Sequence record: OQ708376.1 | Strand: one strand, 5' to 3' | DNA: 64,000 nt | In this document: positions 990 to 58,881 of the stretch, one piece after another | Numbering within the stretch: the stretch's first letter is position 1 | Layout: each line of letters starts with the position of its first letter | Made by a program: the position numbers and the translations under genes | The notes under the pieces: generated by a model | Told to the model about the DNA's origin: nothing | The model's database searches: none | What the model saw: the letters and a program-made list of their open reading frames with translations, nothing else

Positions 990-1466
990 ATGATTCATGA
1001 ACACCGAGGTAATCTGTTTGAATTATTCAGTACTGTTACAGATGATAAAACAGCAATACATATAATTGCTCATGGTTGTAACGCACAGGGTAAAATGGGT
1101 TCAGGTTTTGCAAAAGAGCTAAGAAATCGTTACCCAATGGCATATGATGATTATAAAGCATATGAAAAGGAAATGGGATTTCTTAGAATTGGACAAATTG
1201 CATATTCAGCAATTAACGATAATTTGATTATTGCAAACTGTATTACCCAAAAAATGTACGGTAATGACGGTGCTAAATATGTCAGTTATGATGCAATCGA
1301 CGATGTGTTCAAACATCTAAATTATTTTTGTAAAGTTGATCGAGATGTTCATGTACACTTCCCGAAAATTGGAGCCGATTTGGGCGGCGGTAACTGGAAC
1401 GTTATCAAAGAAATCATTGATCACCGACTGGTCAATGCAGAAAAACACTTATACATTCTAAAATAA
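990..1466 (+). CDS. macro domain protein (T4 Tk.4-like ADP-ribose-binding/hydrolase fold)
   Basis: Macro-domain motifs GNLF, AHGCNAQGKMGSGFAKEL, IANCITQ and FPKIGADLGGGNW; GGAG RBS. Confidence 0.85.
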   Translation: MIHEHRGNLFELFSTVTDDKTAIHIIAHGCNAQGKMGSGFAKELRNRYPMAYDDYKAYEKEMGFLRIGQIAYSAINDNLIIANCITQKMYGNDGAKYVSYDAIDDVFKHLNYFCKVDRDVHVHFPKIGADLGGGNWNVIKEIIDHRLVNAEKHLYILK

Positions 1467-1485
1467 ACAAAAGGACTTGACAAAA

Positions 1486-1794
1486 ATGACTATGACCGTT
1501 AAACTACTAAACATCAATAACATTGGCCCAGTACTAGCAGTTCTACAAACCGATTCTGCTGAAGCTGTTGTAGTTAACTACCCAGCACAACTAGGGACTG
1601 ACGAAAATGGTGAAATCATTCTTCGTGATTATCTAGAGTTTGTTAGTATGGAGAAAAATGTTATTTTTTATAAATCCAACATTATTAGTGTTAGTGATGC
1701 AAACCCTGCATTAGTTGATGCTTATGTTGATGCTATTAAAGCAATCGAAAACACTCCAAAAGTTTTCGTTCCTGAGAATAAAATCATTCTATAA
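1486..1794 (+). CDS. hypothetical small beta-rich protein
   Basis: AAGGA RBS 10 nt before ATG 1486 (the track uses TTG 1477); operon packing. Confidence 0.7.
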   Translation: MTMTVKLLNINNIGPVLAVLQTDSAEAVVVNYPAQLGTDENGEIILRDYLEFVSMEKNVIFYKSNIISVSDANPALVDAYVDAIKAIENTPKVFVPENKIIL

Positions 1795-1806
1795 TAGAGG
1801 TATATA

Positions 1807-2184
1807 ATGGCTGCTAATGACGTTAAAGTAAAAACTATCCAAGCTATCGTAGTACTGAAAGATTCTACACCATCCCCTAAAGAATTAGTAATGGCTGGGA
1901 TGACTATGTTACATCAATACAACCCTGAATCACCTAACTATGTTCAAGAATACGAAGCTAAGAAGTTTAAAGAACATTGGCAGTCATGGATTAAAGATAA
2001 TGAAATGGAGCAGGTAGTTTATGCTGCTGATGACATTTTCGAACTGGAACAAATTGAATATCTAGCTGGTCAGCAATCAGTACCATTGAGCATTTTCGGT
2101 AATGGTGAAGAAGTTCTGGTATTGGGACCATTCACTGCTGATGATATCATTCACTTACTGAGTAATTGTAAGAAAATTGAATAA
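1807..2184 (+). CDS. Pth2 (archaeal/eukaryal-type peptidyl-tRNA hydrolase)-fold protein, catalytic motifs degenerate
   Basis: Segments IQAIVVLKD, W..W....QVVYAADD..EL, SVPLSIF and VLVLGP..ADDI..LLSNCKKI align by eye with the Pth2 pattern. The K..G..AAQ..HA and DAGRTQ motifs are absent. Confidence 0.5.
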   Translation: MAANDVKVKTIQAIVVLKDSTPSPKELVMAGMTMLHQYNPESPNYVQEYEAKKFKEHWQSWIKDNEMEQVVYAADDIFELEQIEYLAGQQSVPLSIFGNGEEVLVLGPFTADDIIHLLSNCKKIE

Positions 2185-2395
2185 AAATTCGAAACTGTCA
2201 GGTTACCGTAACAACACGTTGAAGTACAATGATATTAAGTACTGGGTTGATCCTTACTTAAATAAATCATTGTTAATGTACAGAGATAAATCACGAGATC
2301 TATATGGAATATATGTTACTCAGTTAATATATATAATAGATTCCGAGCATTTTACTCCATTGGTATACCTGTACTGCTTGTATAATTCAAAATAA
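2177..2395 (+). CDS. possible small hypothetical protein
   Basis: 72-aa Tyr-rich ORF with a TTG start overlapping the previous stop; fills the gap before the 2401 hairpin; no clear RBS. Confidence 0.35.
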   Translation: MNKNSKLSGYRNNTLKYNDIKYWVDPYLNKSLLMYRDKSRDLYGIYVTQLIYIIDSEHFTPLVYLYCLYNSK

Positions 2396-2400
2396 CTATT

Positions 2401-2445
2401 AGCACCTCTAAATAATGTATATAAACATTAATGAGGTGCTTTTTT
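2401..2445 (+). promoter_or_regulatory. hairpin/terminator containing a TAAATA late-promoter motif and the neck-gene Shine-Dalgarno
   Basis: Outer stem AGCACCTC(2401-2408)/GAGGTGCT(2433-2440); inner stem TAATGT/ACATTA; T5 tail; TAAATA at 2409-2414; GAGGT SD lies in the 3' arm. Confidence 0.7.
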
Positions 2446-3237
2446 ATGTCTTACGATTATATGGGTGGAAACCCTGATGCTCCTAACTTTGACCATCGTG
2501 AAAAACTGAAAGATGTTATCACTCAAATGTTGGGTGCTGGGGCCGTTGAGGTAGAAATTACTGATGGTCAATTAGAAATTGCAATTGATAATGCGGTATC
2601 GAATTACAGAGCGTGGAGTTCTGCTTCTAAAGAAGAAGCATTTTTAAATATGAAATTTTATGATTCACAATCTGTATATATGCTACCAACTGAAGTTGAA
2701 ATTGTTAAAAAGATTTATCGTTATGGTAATGGTTACTTAAGTTCTGGTAGTGGGAACTCAGTAGATCCGTTTTCTCTAGCATTCACCAACACTTACTTAT
2801 TGACTTCAGCACGAAATGCAGGTGGATATGATCTAACTACATATGATTTTAGTTTTCAGTTCCAAGAACTGGTAGGTCGTATGTTTGGTCGTGATATTAT
2901 ATTTCAATTTAATCCAATGACCAAAAAATTAATTATAGATCGTGATATTCGCGGTACTGAAGAAGTACTATTGCACGTATATCATAATATTCCTGAACCA
3001 TTGTTGTTTCAAAGACAGCAAAGTTATCCTTGGCTACGTGATTGGGCATTGTCTGAAGCCATGATTATGTTGGGTCGTAACCGTGCCAAATTTGCTTCTC
3101 TTCCAGGTCCACAGGGAACGTTTTCTATGGATGGTGATACATTACGTAATGAAGGATTACAACTTCAGGAACAGCTTAAAGAGCGTTTGAAACGTTATCA
3201 AGATGGTGCTGAACCACTAGGTATGATTATTGGTTAA
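2446..3237 (+). CDS. neck protein (T4 gp13-like)
   Basis: N-terminal ..LKDVITQMLGAGAVEVEITDGQLEIAIDNA.. and C-terminal ALSEAMIMLGRNRAKFASLPGPQGTFSMDG match the gp13 family pattern. Start moved to ATG 2446, after the GAGGT SD. Confidence 0.8.
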   Translation: MSYDYMGGNPDAPNFDHREKLKDVITQMLGAGAVEVEITDGQLEIAIDNAVSNYRAWSSASKEEAFLNMKFYDSQSVYMLPTEVEIVKKIYRYGNGYLSSGSGNSVDPFSLAFTNTYLLTSARNAGGYDLTTYDFSFQFQELVGRMFGRDIIFQFNPMTKKLIIDRDIRGTEEVLLHVYHNIPEPLLFQRQQSYPWLRDWALSEAMIMLGRNRAKFASLPGPQGTFSMDGDTLRNEGLQLQEQLKERLKRYQDGAEPLGMIIG

Positions 3238-3240
3238 ATT

Positions 3241-3268
3241 AAAAAAGACTCCTATATGGAGTCTTTTT
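3241..3268 (+). terminator. intrinsic (bidirectional-type) terminator
   Basis: AAAAAAGACTCC-TATAT-GGAGTCTTTTT. Confidence 0.85.
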
Positions 3269-3274
3269 CACATT

Positions 3275-3286
3275 ATGTGATATAAT
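3275..3286 (+). promoter_or_regulatory. extended -10 early-type promoter (ATGTGATATAAT)
   Basis: Same ATGTGATATAAT motif as at 15616 and 41966; no -35 match here; upstream of ORF 3314. Confidence 0.55.
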
Positions 3287-3313
3287 GATAATATTAATCT
3301 TAAGGAACCTAAC

Positions 3314-3583
3314 ATGAATAACAACATAGATGCAATGTATAACAAATATAGTTGTGGTGCACCTACATTAGATTATGAGTCAACTGAAAAATTCTGGAAA
3401 TTTTTAAAAGAATCAATCGTTGATGTTTTCGGTAGAGATCGAATAAACGCGTGGGCGAGTATATGTCGTGATGATAATGGAGAAACATTCTACATCACTT
3501 ATGTTACTATATATTATGGGAGCGAGTTTATAGTTCAATTACTTGAATGTTTAGTAGGAAAGGATTTAGTAGTACTTATATAA
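3314..3583 (+). CDS. hypothetical protein
   Basis: 89 aa; AAGGA RBS; promoter immediately upstream. Confidence 0.7.
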   Translation: MNNNIDAMYNKYSCGAPTLDYESTEKFWKFLKESIVDVFGRDRINAWASICRDDNGETFYITYVTIYYGSEFIVQLLECLVGKDLVVLI

Positions 3584-3601
3584 TATACATGGAGAAGTAT
3601 T

Positions 3602-4228
3602 ATGGAAAGACAAATAATTGCAATTAACGGTACTATTGGAAGTGGTAAAGATACTTTTGGAGAAACTTTTATTAATAATGGTTACACCAGAATGTCATTT
3701 GCAACTAATCTTAAAGATTCCGTTGCTGCTATTTTTGGATGGGATCGTGAAATGCTTGAAGGTTCAACTAAGGAAAGTCGTAAGATTCGTGAAGAACCGG
3801 ACCAGTACTGGTGTGATAAGTTAGGTCGTAGTGATGTATCCCCTCGATGGGTATTGCAGAATTATGGTACTAATATTTTGCGTAAGTATTTTCATAATGA
3901 TATTTGGGTATTCAGTTTAGAAAAATCAATGCAAGAAATAGATGGAAATATCATCATCACTGATTGCCGTTTTCCAAATGAATTAAAAATGATTAGATCG
4001 CAAAATGGGACTATTATTGAAGTTCAACGTGTTCTACCACATTGGTATGGTTTGGCGGCCTCTTATAATAAAGGGGATATTAATATTAAACCAGTTGAAC
4101 TAGAAACAGTACACGAATCTGAGTGGGCTTGGATTGGCATAAACAATCCTGATATAATTGTACAGAATAACAGTACTATTGATGATTTACATAAAAAAGC
4201 AATGGACATTATTTATTCTAATACATAA
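3602..4228 (+). CDS. deoxynucleoside monophosphate kinase (T4 gp1-like)
   Basis: P-loop GTIGSGKDT; FATNLKD; SPRWVLQNYGT; IITDCRFPNE. Confidence 0.9.
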   Translation: MERQIIAINGTIGSGKDTFGETFINNGYTRMSFATNLKDSVAAIFGWDREMLEGSTKESRKIREEPDQYWCDKLGRSDVSPRWVLQNYGTNILRKYFHNDIWVFSLEKSMQEIDGNIIITDCRFPNELKMIRSQNGTIIEVQRVLPHWYGLAASYNKGDINIKPVELETVHESEWAWIGINNPDIIVQNNSTIDDLHKKAMDIIYSNT

Positions 4229-4266
4229 ATTATAAACAATAAGGACTGGACAATTAAATCCTTCAA

Positions 4267-4272
4267 TAAATA
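4267..4272 (+). promoter_or_regulatory. TAAATA late-promoter motif for the tail sheath
   Basis: T4-like late core TAAATA about 50 nt upstream of the sheath ATG. The same motif recurs before most structural genes. Confidence 0.5.
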
Positions 4273-4322
4273 AGACTATACGAATATATTTCGAATAACC
4301 AATTATTTTTGGAGGATTTAAT

Positions 4323-6986
4323 ATGGCAGGAGATCTACTCTCACCTGGCGTTTCCATTTCAGTAACTGATGAAAGTATGAGTACCGCTGCTGCTCCTGGC
4401 ACTGTACCACTATTTGTAATCGCTACTGCTGAAGACAAACTTGTCCCAGGAAGCAGTGCAATAGCTGCGGGAACTACTAAAGCAAACGCTGGAAAACTAC
4501 AGCTTCTAACATCACAAAAAAGCTCACTTGATACCTATGGTACACCAATTTTTCAAATGAATAACGGTTCTGTTGTTCAAGGTGATGAACTAAACGAATA
4601 TGGCCTACATGCAGTATATTCTTATCTAGGCATTACTAACCGTGCATATGTAATTCGTGCTGATATCGATCTAGCACAACTAGCACCAAGTGCTGAAGCA
4701 CCAACTGGCCCAGTATCCAATGGTACTTTGTGGTTTGATACCGCACAATCACAAGTAGAAGCGTATGTAGCGAAGAAAGATAGTCCAAGCAGTTTTTATG
4801 ATTGGCAACTTAAGCCAGTAACTATTGTAAGTGCTGAAGAAGTTGAAGATGTAAGTCTAGTAGGTTTAAATGTTGATGATTTAGTTCTACGTTACAAACC
4901 AAGCAATGGTCAGATGCTAATGTATAAACGTTCTGCTTCTGGGCTAGTGCAAATGGAAACTTATCTATCACCAATTAACAAAGTTCCAGTTGGCTCAACT
5001 GTAGAAAAAGGTAACATTTGGATTCGTGATGGTTACACCCAAAATGGTTCAAACTATTTTGGTACTCGTTTTGTTATTAAACGTTATGCATCCCTAACTC
5101 AAGTTTGGAATATTGTACCAGCATATACTGGTAATTCATTCCAAGAAATTGAAGCGAAAAGTGGTGTACTAAACAATAGTTATATCGCATCTCGTTTTGA
5201 TGAAGATAGTAAGAGTTTCTCTTTCTATATTCAAAGTGCAAAACTAACAACAATTAGTGCTCCTGCTTTGCCACTTGGTGAAACTATTATTGAACAAGCA
5301 GGTGCTGATAGTTATATGACTTTTGTTTATTTGAATAAATCAGTTAAAGTACTAGCAGTTCCACAAGGCGGTGTTATTAATACCCAAACTATCATCAATA
5401 ATCTAAATGCAAATGCTGAAATTATTAACGATGGTTTTAAATTTAAACGTGAAACTAATGGTGGTTTAGTTGTTTCCAATACAAAAGGTTACAGTTTCAA
5501 AATCACACAAAGTGGTGATGATATTTTTGCTGAACCTGAACTACAAAAACTAACTGTAGATAGTAACAACTACTCTCTAATTAACGTTAATAACTTCCGT
5601 GTTAGTTATTCAGTACCACGTAGTGTAGCAAAAGAAGGAACTCTCTGGTATGATTTCGGGAACTCCGATAATCTAACTGTAACTATGTATGTTGCTGATG
5701 TTGCTAATGATCAATGGGATCTAGTACAAGAAGAAAACAAATATGTACAAGTTGATGAACCAGCGGCTGACCGTTTAATTTGGGTTTGTCCTTTGTCTCA
5801 AGGCATTGATGGTTATGATTTCTATCGTAACGTTGATGGTGAATGGGTTAAACTTGACAGTACTGATCAAAGTACACTAAATGGTATGATTTTCCAAGAC
5901 TTTAATTTCCCAAGCCAAGTTCCTGCTGCGGCATTGTATCAAAATGGTATGCTTGCAGTTGACCTAGGTAACACTGAAGGTGTTGTTAAGAAAATGGTTA
6001 ATGGTCAATGGGAAGTTGTTAGTGGTGTAAGTCTTGATGGTGCTGGCCTATTTGGTCGTGCTGCACAACGTCAACTAGTAGTTGAAGCACTAGCTGCTGT
6101 TATTATTGGTAATGATGACATTCGTTCTGAATTTATTGATTTTAACCTAATTTGTGTACCTGGTTACGTTGAAACACTTGATGAATGTGTAACTTTAAAC
6201 ACTGATCGTAAAGAAACTGCATTTATTGTTACTGACGTTCCAGCACGTTTGAATCCAACCGGAAACGGTAGTGCTGTACAACAATGGGCTACTAATGCTA
6301 ACAATGCACCAAGCAACGGTTCAGTTGGTCGTACAACTGCTTATGATTATGCTGCTCAGTATATGGGTTGGTGTCTAAGTACTAACGTTGATGGTGAAGA
6401 AGTTGCAGTTCCTGGTAGTACTATTGCAATGCGTACATATGCATACAGTGATAGTGTTAGTTATGTATGGTATCCACCTGCTGGTACAACTCGTGGTGTT
6501 GTAACAAACGCTGCAAGTACTGGTTTTATCAACAGCGAAGGTGAATATCAACCAGTAGTATACAACCAAGGTCAACGTGACGTTATGTATACTAACAACA
6601 TTAACCCAATTGCAATGCGTCCTAACCGTGGTTTGCTTGTTTATGGAGATAAAACTCTATCTGCTAATCAAACTTCTGCACTAAGTCGTGTTAACGTTGC
6701 TCGTTTAGTTGTTTATATTCGTCGTCAACTAGAAATTATTTCCGAACCATTCCTATTCCGTTTGAATACTCCAAGTACTCGTCAGGAATTTAGTGGTGTA
6801 GTTAATAGCTTCTTGGCTGAAATTGTTCAACAACAGGGTCTTTATAACTTCGCAGTGGTTTGTGATGAAAGTAACAACACCGCAGAGCGTATTGACCGTA
6901 ATGAACTTTGGATGGATATTGCAATTCAACCAACTAAGAGTATTAACTTCATTTACGTACCAATCCGTATCGAGAAAACTCAATAA
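4323..6986 (+). CDS. tail sheath protein (T4 gp18-like)
   Basis: N-terminal LLSPGVSISVTDES; C-terminal WYPPAGTTRG, NINPI, GDKTL, RVNVARL, CDESNNTAERIDRNELWMDIAIQPTKSINFIYV. Confidence 0.95.
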   Translation: MAGDLLSPGVSISVTDESMSTAAAPGTVPLFVIATAEDKLVPGSSAIAAGTTKANAGKLQLLTSQKSSLDTYGTPIFQMNNGSVVQGDELNEYGLHAVYSYLGITNRAYVIRADIDLAQLAPSAEAPTGPVSNGTLWFDTAQSQVEAYVAKKDSPSSFYDWQLKPVTIVSAEEVEDVSLVGLNVDDLVLRYKPSNGQMLMYKRSASGLVQMETYLSPINKVPVGSTVEKGNIWIRDGYTQNGSNYFGTRFVIKRYASLTQVWNIVPAYTGNSFQEIEAKSGVLNNSYIASRFDEDSKSFSFYIQSAKLTTISAPALPLGETIIEQAGADSYMTFVYLNKSVKVLAVPQGGVINTQTIINNLNANAEIINDGFKFKRETNGGLVVSNTKGYSFKITQSGDDIFAEPELQKLTVDSNNYSLINVNNFRVSYSVPRSVAKEGTLWYDFGNSDNLTVTMYVADVANDQWDLVQEENKYVQVDEPAADRLIWVCPLSQGIDGYDFYRNVDGEWVKLDSTDQSTLNGMIFQDFNFPSQVPAAALYQNGMLAVDLGNTEGVVKKMVNGQWEVVSGVSLDGAGLFGRAAQRQLVVEALAAVIIGNDDIRSEFIDFNLICVPGYVETLDECVTLNTDRKETAFIVTDVPARLNPTGNGSAVQQWATNANNAPSNGSVGRTTAYDYAAQYMGWCLSTNVDGEEVAVPGSTIAMRTYAYSDSVSYVWYPPAGTTRGVVTNAASTGFINSEGEYQPVVYNQGQRDVMYTNNINPIAMRPNRGLLVYGDKTLSANQTSALSRVNVARLVVYIRRQLEIISEPFLFRLNTPSTRQEFSGVVNSFLAEIVQQQGLYNFAVVCDESNNTAERIDRNELWMDIAIQPTKSINFIYVPIRIEKTQ

Positions 6987-6992
6987 AACACT

Positions 6993-7018
6993 AAGGGAAC
7001 CTTTTGGTTCCCTTTTTT
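6993..7018 (+). terminator. intrinsic terminator after the sheath gene
   Basis: AAGGGAACC-TTTT-GGTTCCCTT followed by TTTT. Confidence 0.9.
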
Positions 7019-58368: not shown

Positions 58369-58857
58369 TTATACGGATTCAACAATACGTGCCATCTTTT
58401 CCGCTCTTGAAGTGGTTTGTTTATACCATGTACTATCACGCAATTCCTTACCAGCAGTTTTATAATCAGCCTTACCTAATGCGGTCATTGCTTTTTTAAA
58501 TTTTAAAACTTTGGTTTTTCCCATCTGGAATACCATCAACCATAATACACGTTGAACCTGTACAGGTGCGGTCATACCAAATTGTTCATAAATTGATTTT
58601 GCATCATTGTACGCAGTTTGAGCATCTTTAAGAAGAAGTTGGTCAGCTTGTGCTTCTGTTAAACCATTCTTGAAATTTTCACCAGGTAAAACTAGGTGAC
58701 CATAGCCAATAGTATCAAGACCTAAGCTGTCTTTATATACCCAAAACTTATCATTTTTAAAATAACCAAGTTTTTTCTGATAAGCAATAGTTCCTTCAAA
58801 TTCTTTAATTTCCTTAAAAAATTGCTCATCTGTATTTTTAATTTCCCATTTACTCAT
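58369..58857 (-). CDS. T4-lysozyme-like (GH24) muramidase, probable endolysin
   Basis: EFEG...YKDSLGLDTIGYGH, MVFQMG, KF......, ELRDSTWYKQTTSRA; own TATAAATA and GAGGA RBS. Confidence 0.9.
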   Translation of the reverse strand: MSKWEIKNTDEQFFKEIKEFEGTIAYQKKLGYFKNDKFWVYKDSLGLDTIGYGHLVLPGENFKNGLTEAQADQLLLKDAQTAYNDAKSIYEQFGMTAPVQVQRVLWLMVFQMGKTKVLKFKKAMTALGKADYKTAGKELRDSTWYKQTTSRAEKMARIVESV

Positions 58858-58873
58858 AAAGATATCCTCGTTT

Positions 58874-58881
58874 TATTTATA
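58874..58881 (-). promoter_or_regulatory. T4-type late promoter TATAAATA
   Basis: Full T4 late consensus on the minus strand, 16 nt before the lysozyme ATG. Confidence 0.6.

Follow-up and report, generated by a model that had tools for sequence, protein, structure and literature searches.

The DNA analysed here, which we call the window, is a stretch of 64,000 nucleotides from sequence record OQ708376.1. Around the hairpin described below, it is 100% identical to Escherichia phage vB_EcoM_CRJP21 and 95-99.9% identical to phAPEC6, PBECO4 and 121Q, the 'Rak2-like' jumbo myoviruses of about 350 kb grouped in Asteriusvirus; the window is that of an Asteriusvirus jumbo coliphage of the 121Q/PBECO4 group. 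The features of the locus are collected in Table 1. The neck and tail sheath genes each lie downstream of non-structural genes of the same strand, which encode a macro-domain protein and a peptidyl-tRNA-hydrolase-like protein in the first case and the dNMP kinase in the second.

The neck protein matches phrog_211 (head-tail adaptor Ad2) at 1e-41, a profile of 10 of its orthologues matches the T4 gp13 structures 9mkb and 9lu4 at 2e-13, and its orthologue has been detected in phAPEC6 virions by mass spectrometry; a Pfam search with the protein gave no match. The profile matches and the virion detection make the label 'gp13-like', which the preliminary description had given to this gene, a correct one. 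An in-frame ATG at 2431 was rejected as the start of the gene: it has no Shine-Dalgarno (SD) sequence and is not conserved, and relatives share the N-terminus MSYDY and the SD spacing that go with the ATG at 2446. Directly 3' of the neck gene, ph0011, Muenster and RaK2 carry a large endonuclease-domain (homing endonuclease) gene, which begins at position 2019 of locus L004, 2055 of L008 and 2060 of L009, respectively; in the window, that place is taken by the small hypothetical gene and the gene for dNMP kinase.

What looked like a 261-nt 'gap' before the neck gene is filled by a small ORF (2177-2395), whose stop codon is situated 5 nt 5' of the hairpin. In four Asteriusvirus subgroups that are about 82% identical in nucleotides, its frame is open and its amino acids are conserved, and the other two frames across the same interval are full of stops. 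The ORF is absent from JNE01, RaK2 and other genera and is unannotated in several records; no similarity was found between it and the extra small gene present at the same place in Erwinia phage Hallingskeid.

Table 1. Features of the window from the macro-domain gene to the tail sheath gene
Feature	Position	Strand	Evidence or remark
Macro-domain protein gene	990-1466	+	
Small protein gene	1477-1794	+	
Small protein gene	1807-2184	+	peptidyl-tRNA-hydrolase-like according to the annotation of relatives
Small ORF, 72 codons from TTG	2177-2395	+	121Q gene 547
Outer 5' arm AGCACCTC, anti-SD segment	2401-2408	+	pairs with 2433-2440 in the minimum-free-energy fold; covaries
TAAATA, predicted T4-type (gp55-dependent) late promoter core	2409-2414	+	
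Inner stem-loop, TAATGT / 6-nt loop / ACATTA	2413-2418 / 2419-2424 / 2425-2430	+	
Outer 3' arm GAGGTGCT	2433-2440	+	contains the SD GAGG(T) at 2433-2437
T6 run, possible terminator U-tract and SD-to-ATG spacer	2440-2445	+	five T unpaired after the stem
Neck protein gene (head-tail adaptor Ad2, T4 gp13-like)	2446-3237	+	phrog_211 and gp13 profile matches
Canonical terminator closing the neck gene cassette	3247-3268	+	sequence; ARNold terminator at the corresponding place of G17
TGATATAAT, extended -10 promoter-like site ahead of the next two genes	3278-3286	+	motif match only
Hypothetical gene	3314-3583	+	
dNMP kinase gene	3602-4228	+	
Sheath leader hairpin: anti-SD arm / TAAATA / 3' arm	4251-4266 / 4267-4272 / 4309-4322	+	SD GGAGG at 4311-4315; no T-run
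Tail sheath gene	4323-6986	+	phrog_10581, E = 0

The neck gene leader is predicted to fold over its Shine-Dalgarno sequence

The minimum-free-energy RNA fold of 2401-2440 is a two-tier hairpin of -17.0 kcal/mol (z = -5.25), and none of 200 dinucleotide shuffles folds as stably. The outer stem comprises 8 pairs, 5 of which are G-C, and its arms are separated by 24 nt. The SD of the neck gene is fully paired in the predicted fold, with a probability of 1.0 of pairing with bases located 5' of the predicted transcription start, and the leader running from this start to the ATG has a predicted energy of -0.4 kcal/mol versus -17 for the full leader. The preliminary description had reported the two stems, the GAGGT SD in the 3' arm, the TAAATA motif and the T tail; all of them are found where it had placed them, and the predicted fold is identical to the one it described. 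Its title placed the late promoter in the 5' arm; TAAATA is nested in the hairpin, but the motif abuts the outer 5' arm on its 3' side instead of lying inside it, and shares 2 nt with the inner 5' arm. It is in the GAP32-like relatives that TAAATA is located inside the 5' arm.

We extended the same prediction to 114 kb, made up of the window and the next 50 kb (OQ708376.1 188001-238000). Pairing of the SD with upstream sequence at P >= 0.9 is predicted for 9 of the 93 genes, which rules out SD occlusion alone as an unusual trait. Since predicted SD pairing is not rare in this genome, the fold of a single sequence is weak evidence, and the argument is carried by conservation, by covariation and by the invariant motif nested in the hairpin.

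The hairpin is conserved and its arms covary across genera

Neck gene leaders were gathered from 21 GenBank phages and 19 IMG/VR contigs, which yielded 25 distinct sequences including that of the window. When folded individually, 24 of the 25, that is all but that of the more distant phage PA5oct, which lacks the hairpin, form an SD-occluding hairpin (weakly in the Vibrio phage) in which the SD pairs with a segment lying directly 5' of TAAATA or over it; PA5oct and the Vibrio phage aside, the energies range from -17 to -25 kcal/mol. The layout consisting of a 5' arm, TAAATA, a loop, an SD-containing 3' arm and the ATG is thereby present, besides the window, in 23 distinct leaders of orthologous neck genes; at least four genera are represented, the sources being Asteriusvirus, Alcyoneusvirus, Mimasvirus, Eneladusvirus, unclassified phages and IMG/VR contigs.

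Conservation between genera does not extend to the sequence 5' of the hairpin, and the inner structure and the loop vary between lineages. The arms are AGCACCTC/GAGGTGCT in Asteriusvirus and Alcyoneusvirus, GCACCCCTAT/ATAGGGGTGC with GTAC and AAC variants in the SE_PL-like phages, ACCCCTAAA/TTTAGGGGT in Mimasvirus and Eneladusvirus, and ATCCTCTAAA/TTTAGAGGAT in XaC1, with a G.U pair in EJP2. A plain MAFFT alignment shifts the 5' arms of the SE_PL type by 2 nt from their register, and we therefore relied on pair counts made in the minimum-free-energy fold of each sequence, with positions anchored on the GG of the SD, and on a covariance-model alignment. By the first approach, compensatory double changes are observed at four stem positions, with U-A 8/C-G 14, A-U 20/U-A 3, C-G 8/U-A 8/A-U 3 and G-C 9/A-U 5. 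In the covariance-model alignment of 23 sequences, in which 80% of the cells are paired and some are left unpaired, double-sided changes affect 4 of the 9 pairs and 20 cells; this alignment has a covariation score of 0.247, compared with 0.156 in shuffles (0 of 500 reach 0.247) and at most 0.161 in slid-register controls. Conservation and covariation of the stem in related jumbo phages, which had been put forward as a check by the preliminary description, are thus observed across genera. Because its arms covary across genera, the neck hairpin is, on this comparative evidence, a structure under selection.

TAAATA as the predicted core of a late promoter

All 18 aligned neck leaders carry an unchanged TAAATA, though its pairing partners differ by lineage. 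The window contains 47 copies of this hexamer versus 119 expected, of which 21 are found in 2.8 kb of intergenic DNA versus 26 in 61 kb of coding DNA, a 17-fold enrichment (p = 1.5e-16). Half of the 20 copies located no more than 100 nt upstream of a gene sit 34-43 nt from the start codon, at 37 nt in the case of the neck gene, and copies are present upstream of the tail tube, baseplate and other structural genes.

The neck site reads TCTAAATA and agrees with the T4 late consensus TATAAATA at 6 of 8 bases, the match being confined to the TAAATA core; the complete 8-bp T4 box is not present at the neck site of the window and is carried at this site by the SE_PL-like relatives. Full copies of TATAAATA number one in the window versus 10.6 expected. 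This sole copy, at 58874-58881 on the minus strand, precedes a lysozyme-domain baseplate gene (58369-58857).

In phage CBB, a MEME analysis of the regions upstream of structural genes led to ATAAATA as a putative late promoter, and the late-promoter list of that study (Table S7) includes the orthologous sites of the neck gene (Porf_201) and of the sheath gene (Porf_204) (PMC5259590). Likeness to the predicted ATAAATA late promoters of CBB and GAP32 thus extends to orthologous neck and sheath sites and to the presence of a gp55-like sigma, but the CBB study reports the motif alone, with no surrounding SD-occluding hairpin and no entry at the site in its terminator table.

The gp55-like late sigma of the present phage is encoded about 1 kb beyond the window, at 189009-189845 of OQ708376.1. 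Its identity to CBB_244 is 74%, and its profile matches are phrog_12791 (3e-154) and the late sigma phrog_234 (8e-18); a PDB sequence search gave no match for it. Over 188001-238000 of the CRJP21 record, this sigma (189009-189848) is labelled 'structural protein' and a neighbouring virion structural protein is labelled hypothetical, so that the product names of the record look displaced.

T4 late promoters are made of a TATA box placed about one helical turn before the start and followed by AT-rich DNA (PMC2988020). The 12 bases 3' of the neck TAAATA include only 2 G/C. Applying the T4 geometry to TAAATA puts the predicted start at about 2419-2421, 3' of both 5' arms, and we infer that the motif is the core of a late promoter whose transcripts would start there.

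The tail sheath leader and other occurrences of the design

The leader of the tail sheath gene has the same organization. AAATCCTTCAA, directly 5' of TAAATA, pairs with TTGGAGGATTT over the SD, giving a predicted fold of -21.3 kcal/mol (z = -5.9), and there is no terminator between the dNMP kinase and sheath genes. The succession of anti-SD arm, TAAATA and SD is found in 17 distinct variants of the sheath leader from the same genera, and is conserved in every relative that was examined. The predicted late sheath leader also contains a short palindrome (4281-4293, CGAA-loop-TTCG), conserved with its flanks across genera, which could stabilise the 5' end as a hairpin or act as a binding site.

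Among about 40 TAAATA-to-gene pairs in the 114 kb, strong occlusion is predicted only for the neck gene, the sheath gene, the gene at 698 and a gene of 102 aa. The design being absent from most of them, its generality to TAAATA-preceded genes is ruled out.

The TAAATA at 645-650 overlaps the stop of an upstream ORF and lies ahead of an 80-aa gene (698-940). There, ATTTGGG, at the SD of this gene, is paired with CCCTAAAT, a small hairpin (656-674) being located between them, and the SD is occluded with a predicted probability of 0.97; the interval 640-700 is a possible third instance. The 102-aa gene shows a variant geometry. At about 205469-205506 of OQ708376.1 (17469-17506 of locus L045), TAAATA is immediately followed by TCTCCAT, and the ATGGAGA at the SD of the gene pairs with this heptamer, the inhibitory arm thus extending on either side of the predicted start site.

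Discussion

We propose that the neck hairpin is a temporal gate of the T4 type on the translation of a late structural gene, and we consider this reading likely. Transcripts started upstream would carry both outer arms, so that 2401-2408 would pair with 2433-2440 and the paired SD arm would keep the 30S subunits off the neck initiation site. In the lineage of the window, the GC-rich base of the stem followed by U5-6 would probably stop part of these long transcripts just before the ATG. Late in infection, the gp55-like sigma would direct RNA polymerase to TAAATA, inside the hairpin, with a start at about 2419-2421, and the resulting RNAs, devoid of both 5' arms, would form no terminator, would expose the SD and would allow the neck protein to be made. 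The late starts are predicted near 2419-2421 for the neck gene and near 4278 for the sheath gene, and the early 3' ends near 2441-2446. The literature that we searched on Asteriusvirus and Rak2-like phages contains no transcript mapping, ribosome occupancy or structure probing and no mention of the hairpin.

The precedent invoked by the preliminary description, the RBS-occluding hairpins of the T4 genes e, soc and 49, is as it had claimed. In T4, inhibitory leader hairpins are known for e (lysozyme), soc, 49 and I-TevI, and also for I-TevII/III, segB and Aeh1 mobE (PMC3014915, PMC2988022). In these leaders, a gp55-type late promoter is preceded or overlapped by the 5' strand of a helix that engages the SD and sometimes the AUG. 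The gene is downstream of earlier genes of the same strand, and its late transcripts, begun within the structure, are devoid of the 5' strand (PMC3014915, PMC2988022). The neck leader resembles this class by the helix formed between the SD and an upstream segment, by a promoter motif predicted 3' of the inhibitory strand, by the same-strand context and by a gp55-type late sigma, which the phage encodes as T4 does. The switch that the preliminary description had drawn from this precedent is consistent with the covariation of the stem, the position of TAAATA, the late-promoter prediction made for CBB and the gp55-like sigma. Unlike the T4 class, it would operate in Rak2-like jumbo phages, which are only distantly related to T4, and on core virion genes (neck and sheath) instead of lysis, decoration, nuclease and homing-endonuclease genes; the promoter is reduced to the TAAATA core in place of the full TATAAATA, and a U-tract is added in the lineage of the window, so that the predicted hairpin resembles a terminator.

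This resemblance has to be weighed, since the hairpin could be a plain intrinsic terminator of the upstream operon and the occlusion of the SD could have no selected role. A stem of 8 pairs with 5 G-C, directly followed by T5 (T6 when the last paired T is counted) and placed 5 nt past the stop of the upstream ORF, is what such a reading would expect; a compact genome would place the promoter and SD of the next gene on top of it, a run of T4-T8 is kept in most relatives, and covariation is expected of terminator stems too. The T-run, however, varies from 0 to 8 among relatives: it is absent from RaK2/Muenster, where the RaK2 stem reaches into the AUG, and from Hallingskeid, and is reduced to T3 in EJP2, and yet the SD-occluding stem is kept in all of them. 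The sheath leader shows the same anti-SD/TAAATA/SD design with no T-run at all. The Rho-independent terminators of the phage (among them 949-972, 3247-3268 and 6993-7014) share with the neck hairpin a GC-rich base, an immediate T-run and a position after a stop codon, but they are compact, with loops of 4-5 nt, whereas the neck hairpin is a far longer two-tier structure of 40 nt with an AT-rich interior that contains a promoter motif, its 3' arm is the SD of the next gene and its T-run is not conserved in the orthologues. The neck hairpin was not called in a terminator scan of the window, and the ARNold terminators in the G17 and CBB annotations have no entry at it. We therefore regard the plain terminator as an unlikely explanation.

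The same observations bear on the proposal that the hairpin doubles as the terminator of the upstream operon. The GC-rich base and the T5-6 located 5 nt past the upstream stop make some termination plausible, and the hairpin probably also terminates upstream transcription in the lineage of the window. This is nevertheless the weakest part of the preliminary description: the window and most relatives have a T-run after the stem, RaK2/Muenster and Hallingskeid have none, and that of EJP2 is short. The absence of the T-run from several lineages designates SD occlusion, and not termination, as the conserved feature; the absence of terminator calls, the difference from the compact terminators and the sheath design without T-run argue likewise that termination is not the conserved function. 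If termination at the hairpin were efficient, little read-through would be left to silence, and occlusion would add little in the lineage of the window.

The hairpin could also be a protein-binding operator or an RNA-stability element, that is a repressor or nuclease site or a 3'-end protection, and not a promoter-dependent switch. A hairpin at the end of an operon protects against 3' exonucleases. In T4-type phages, stable conserved hairpins in initiation regions are the sites of repressors (PMC3014915). What covariation preserves here is nevertheless the pairing and not the sequence: the loop and the inner stem differ between lineages, so that there is no conserved recognition surface beyond TAAATA and the SD. 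Furthermore, an Rfam scan of 2100-4400 at permissive E-values gave nothing near any gathering score, and we hold this possibility to be quite improbable. Slightly more improbable still is a translational coupling in which ribosomes terminating on the upstream ORF would melt the 5' arm and the neck gene would be translated only in step with its neighbour. With an upstream stop that is 5 nt away from the 5' arm in the window and 2-14 nt away in relatives, a terminating ribosome might open part of the stem. Against such coupling as the conserved role, however, there is no overlap between the 5' arm and the upstream ORF in any case, the two are 10-14 nt apart in JNE01 and RaK2, and at the sheath hairpin the distance is about 23 nt, which is out of reach. 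There is, besides, no obvious logic in making a virion protein depend on an upstream gene that is small or non-structural, and the invariant TAAATA inside the hairpin is left unexplained.

If the temporal gate that we propose is the right reading, a classic post-transcriptional mechanism of T4 would be extended to core virion genes of distant and poorly studied jumbo phages; what makes the case notable is the deep conservation, the nature of the targets and the twin at the sheath gene. We give an even chance to the idea that the Rak2-like jumbo phages share an ancient modular cassette insulating virion genes that are scattered among early and middle genes. The cassette would consist of an anti-SD arm, a gp55-type promoter core, an SD arm and an optional U-tract, and would serve the neck gene, the sheath gene and perhaps a few more. 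A single hairpin would then have three jobs, in that it would end or silence earlier transcription, would host the late promoter and would be disarmed as late RNAs begin inside it. If so, the hairpins regarded as a 'special case' in T4 would represent a general and evolutionarily old principle of T4-related late control. For the annotation of these genomes, a TAAATA about 37-41 nt before a start codon would designate a late gene, and an anti-SD segment directly 5' of this TAAATA would designate a late gene within an earlier transcription unit.

Other promoter-like sequences of the window

The CBB-style promoter pattern TGAAAC-N-TATAAT is not enriched in the window, and TGNTATAAT occurs 14 times versus 8 expected. 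The exact extended -10-like 9-mer TGATATAAT recurs 10 times, including the plus-strand copies at 3278, 15619, 18688 and 41969. Several copies lie just upstream of genes (3314, 15797, 18716 and 41997), and TGATATAAT may represent an early or middle promoter class of the phage.
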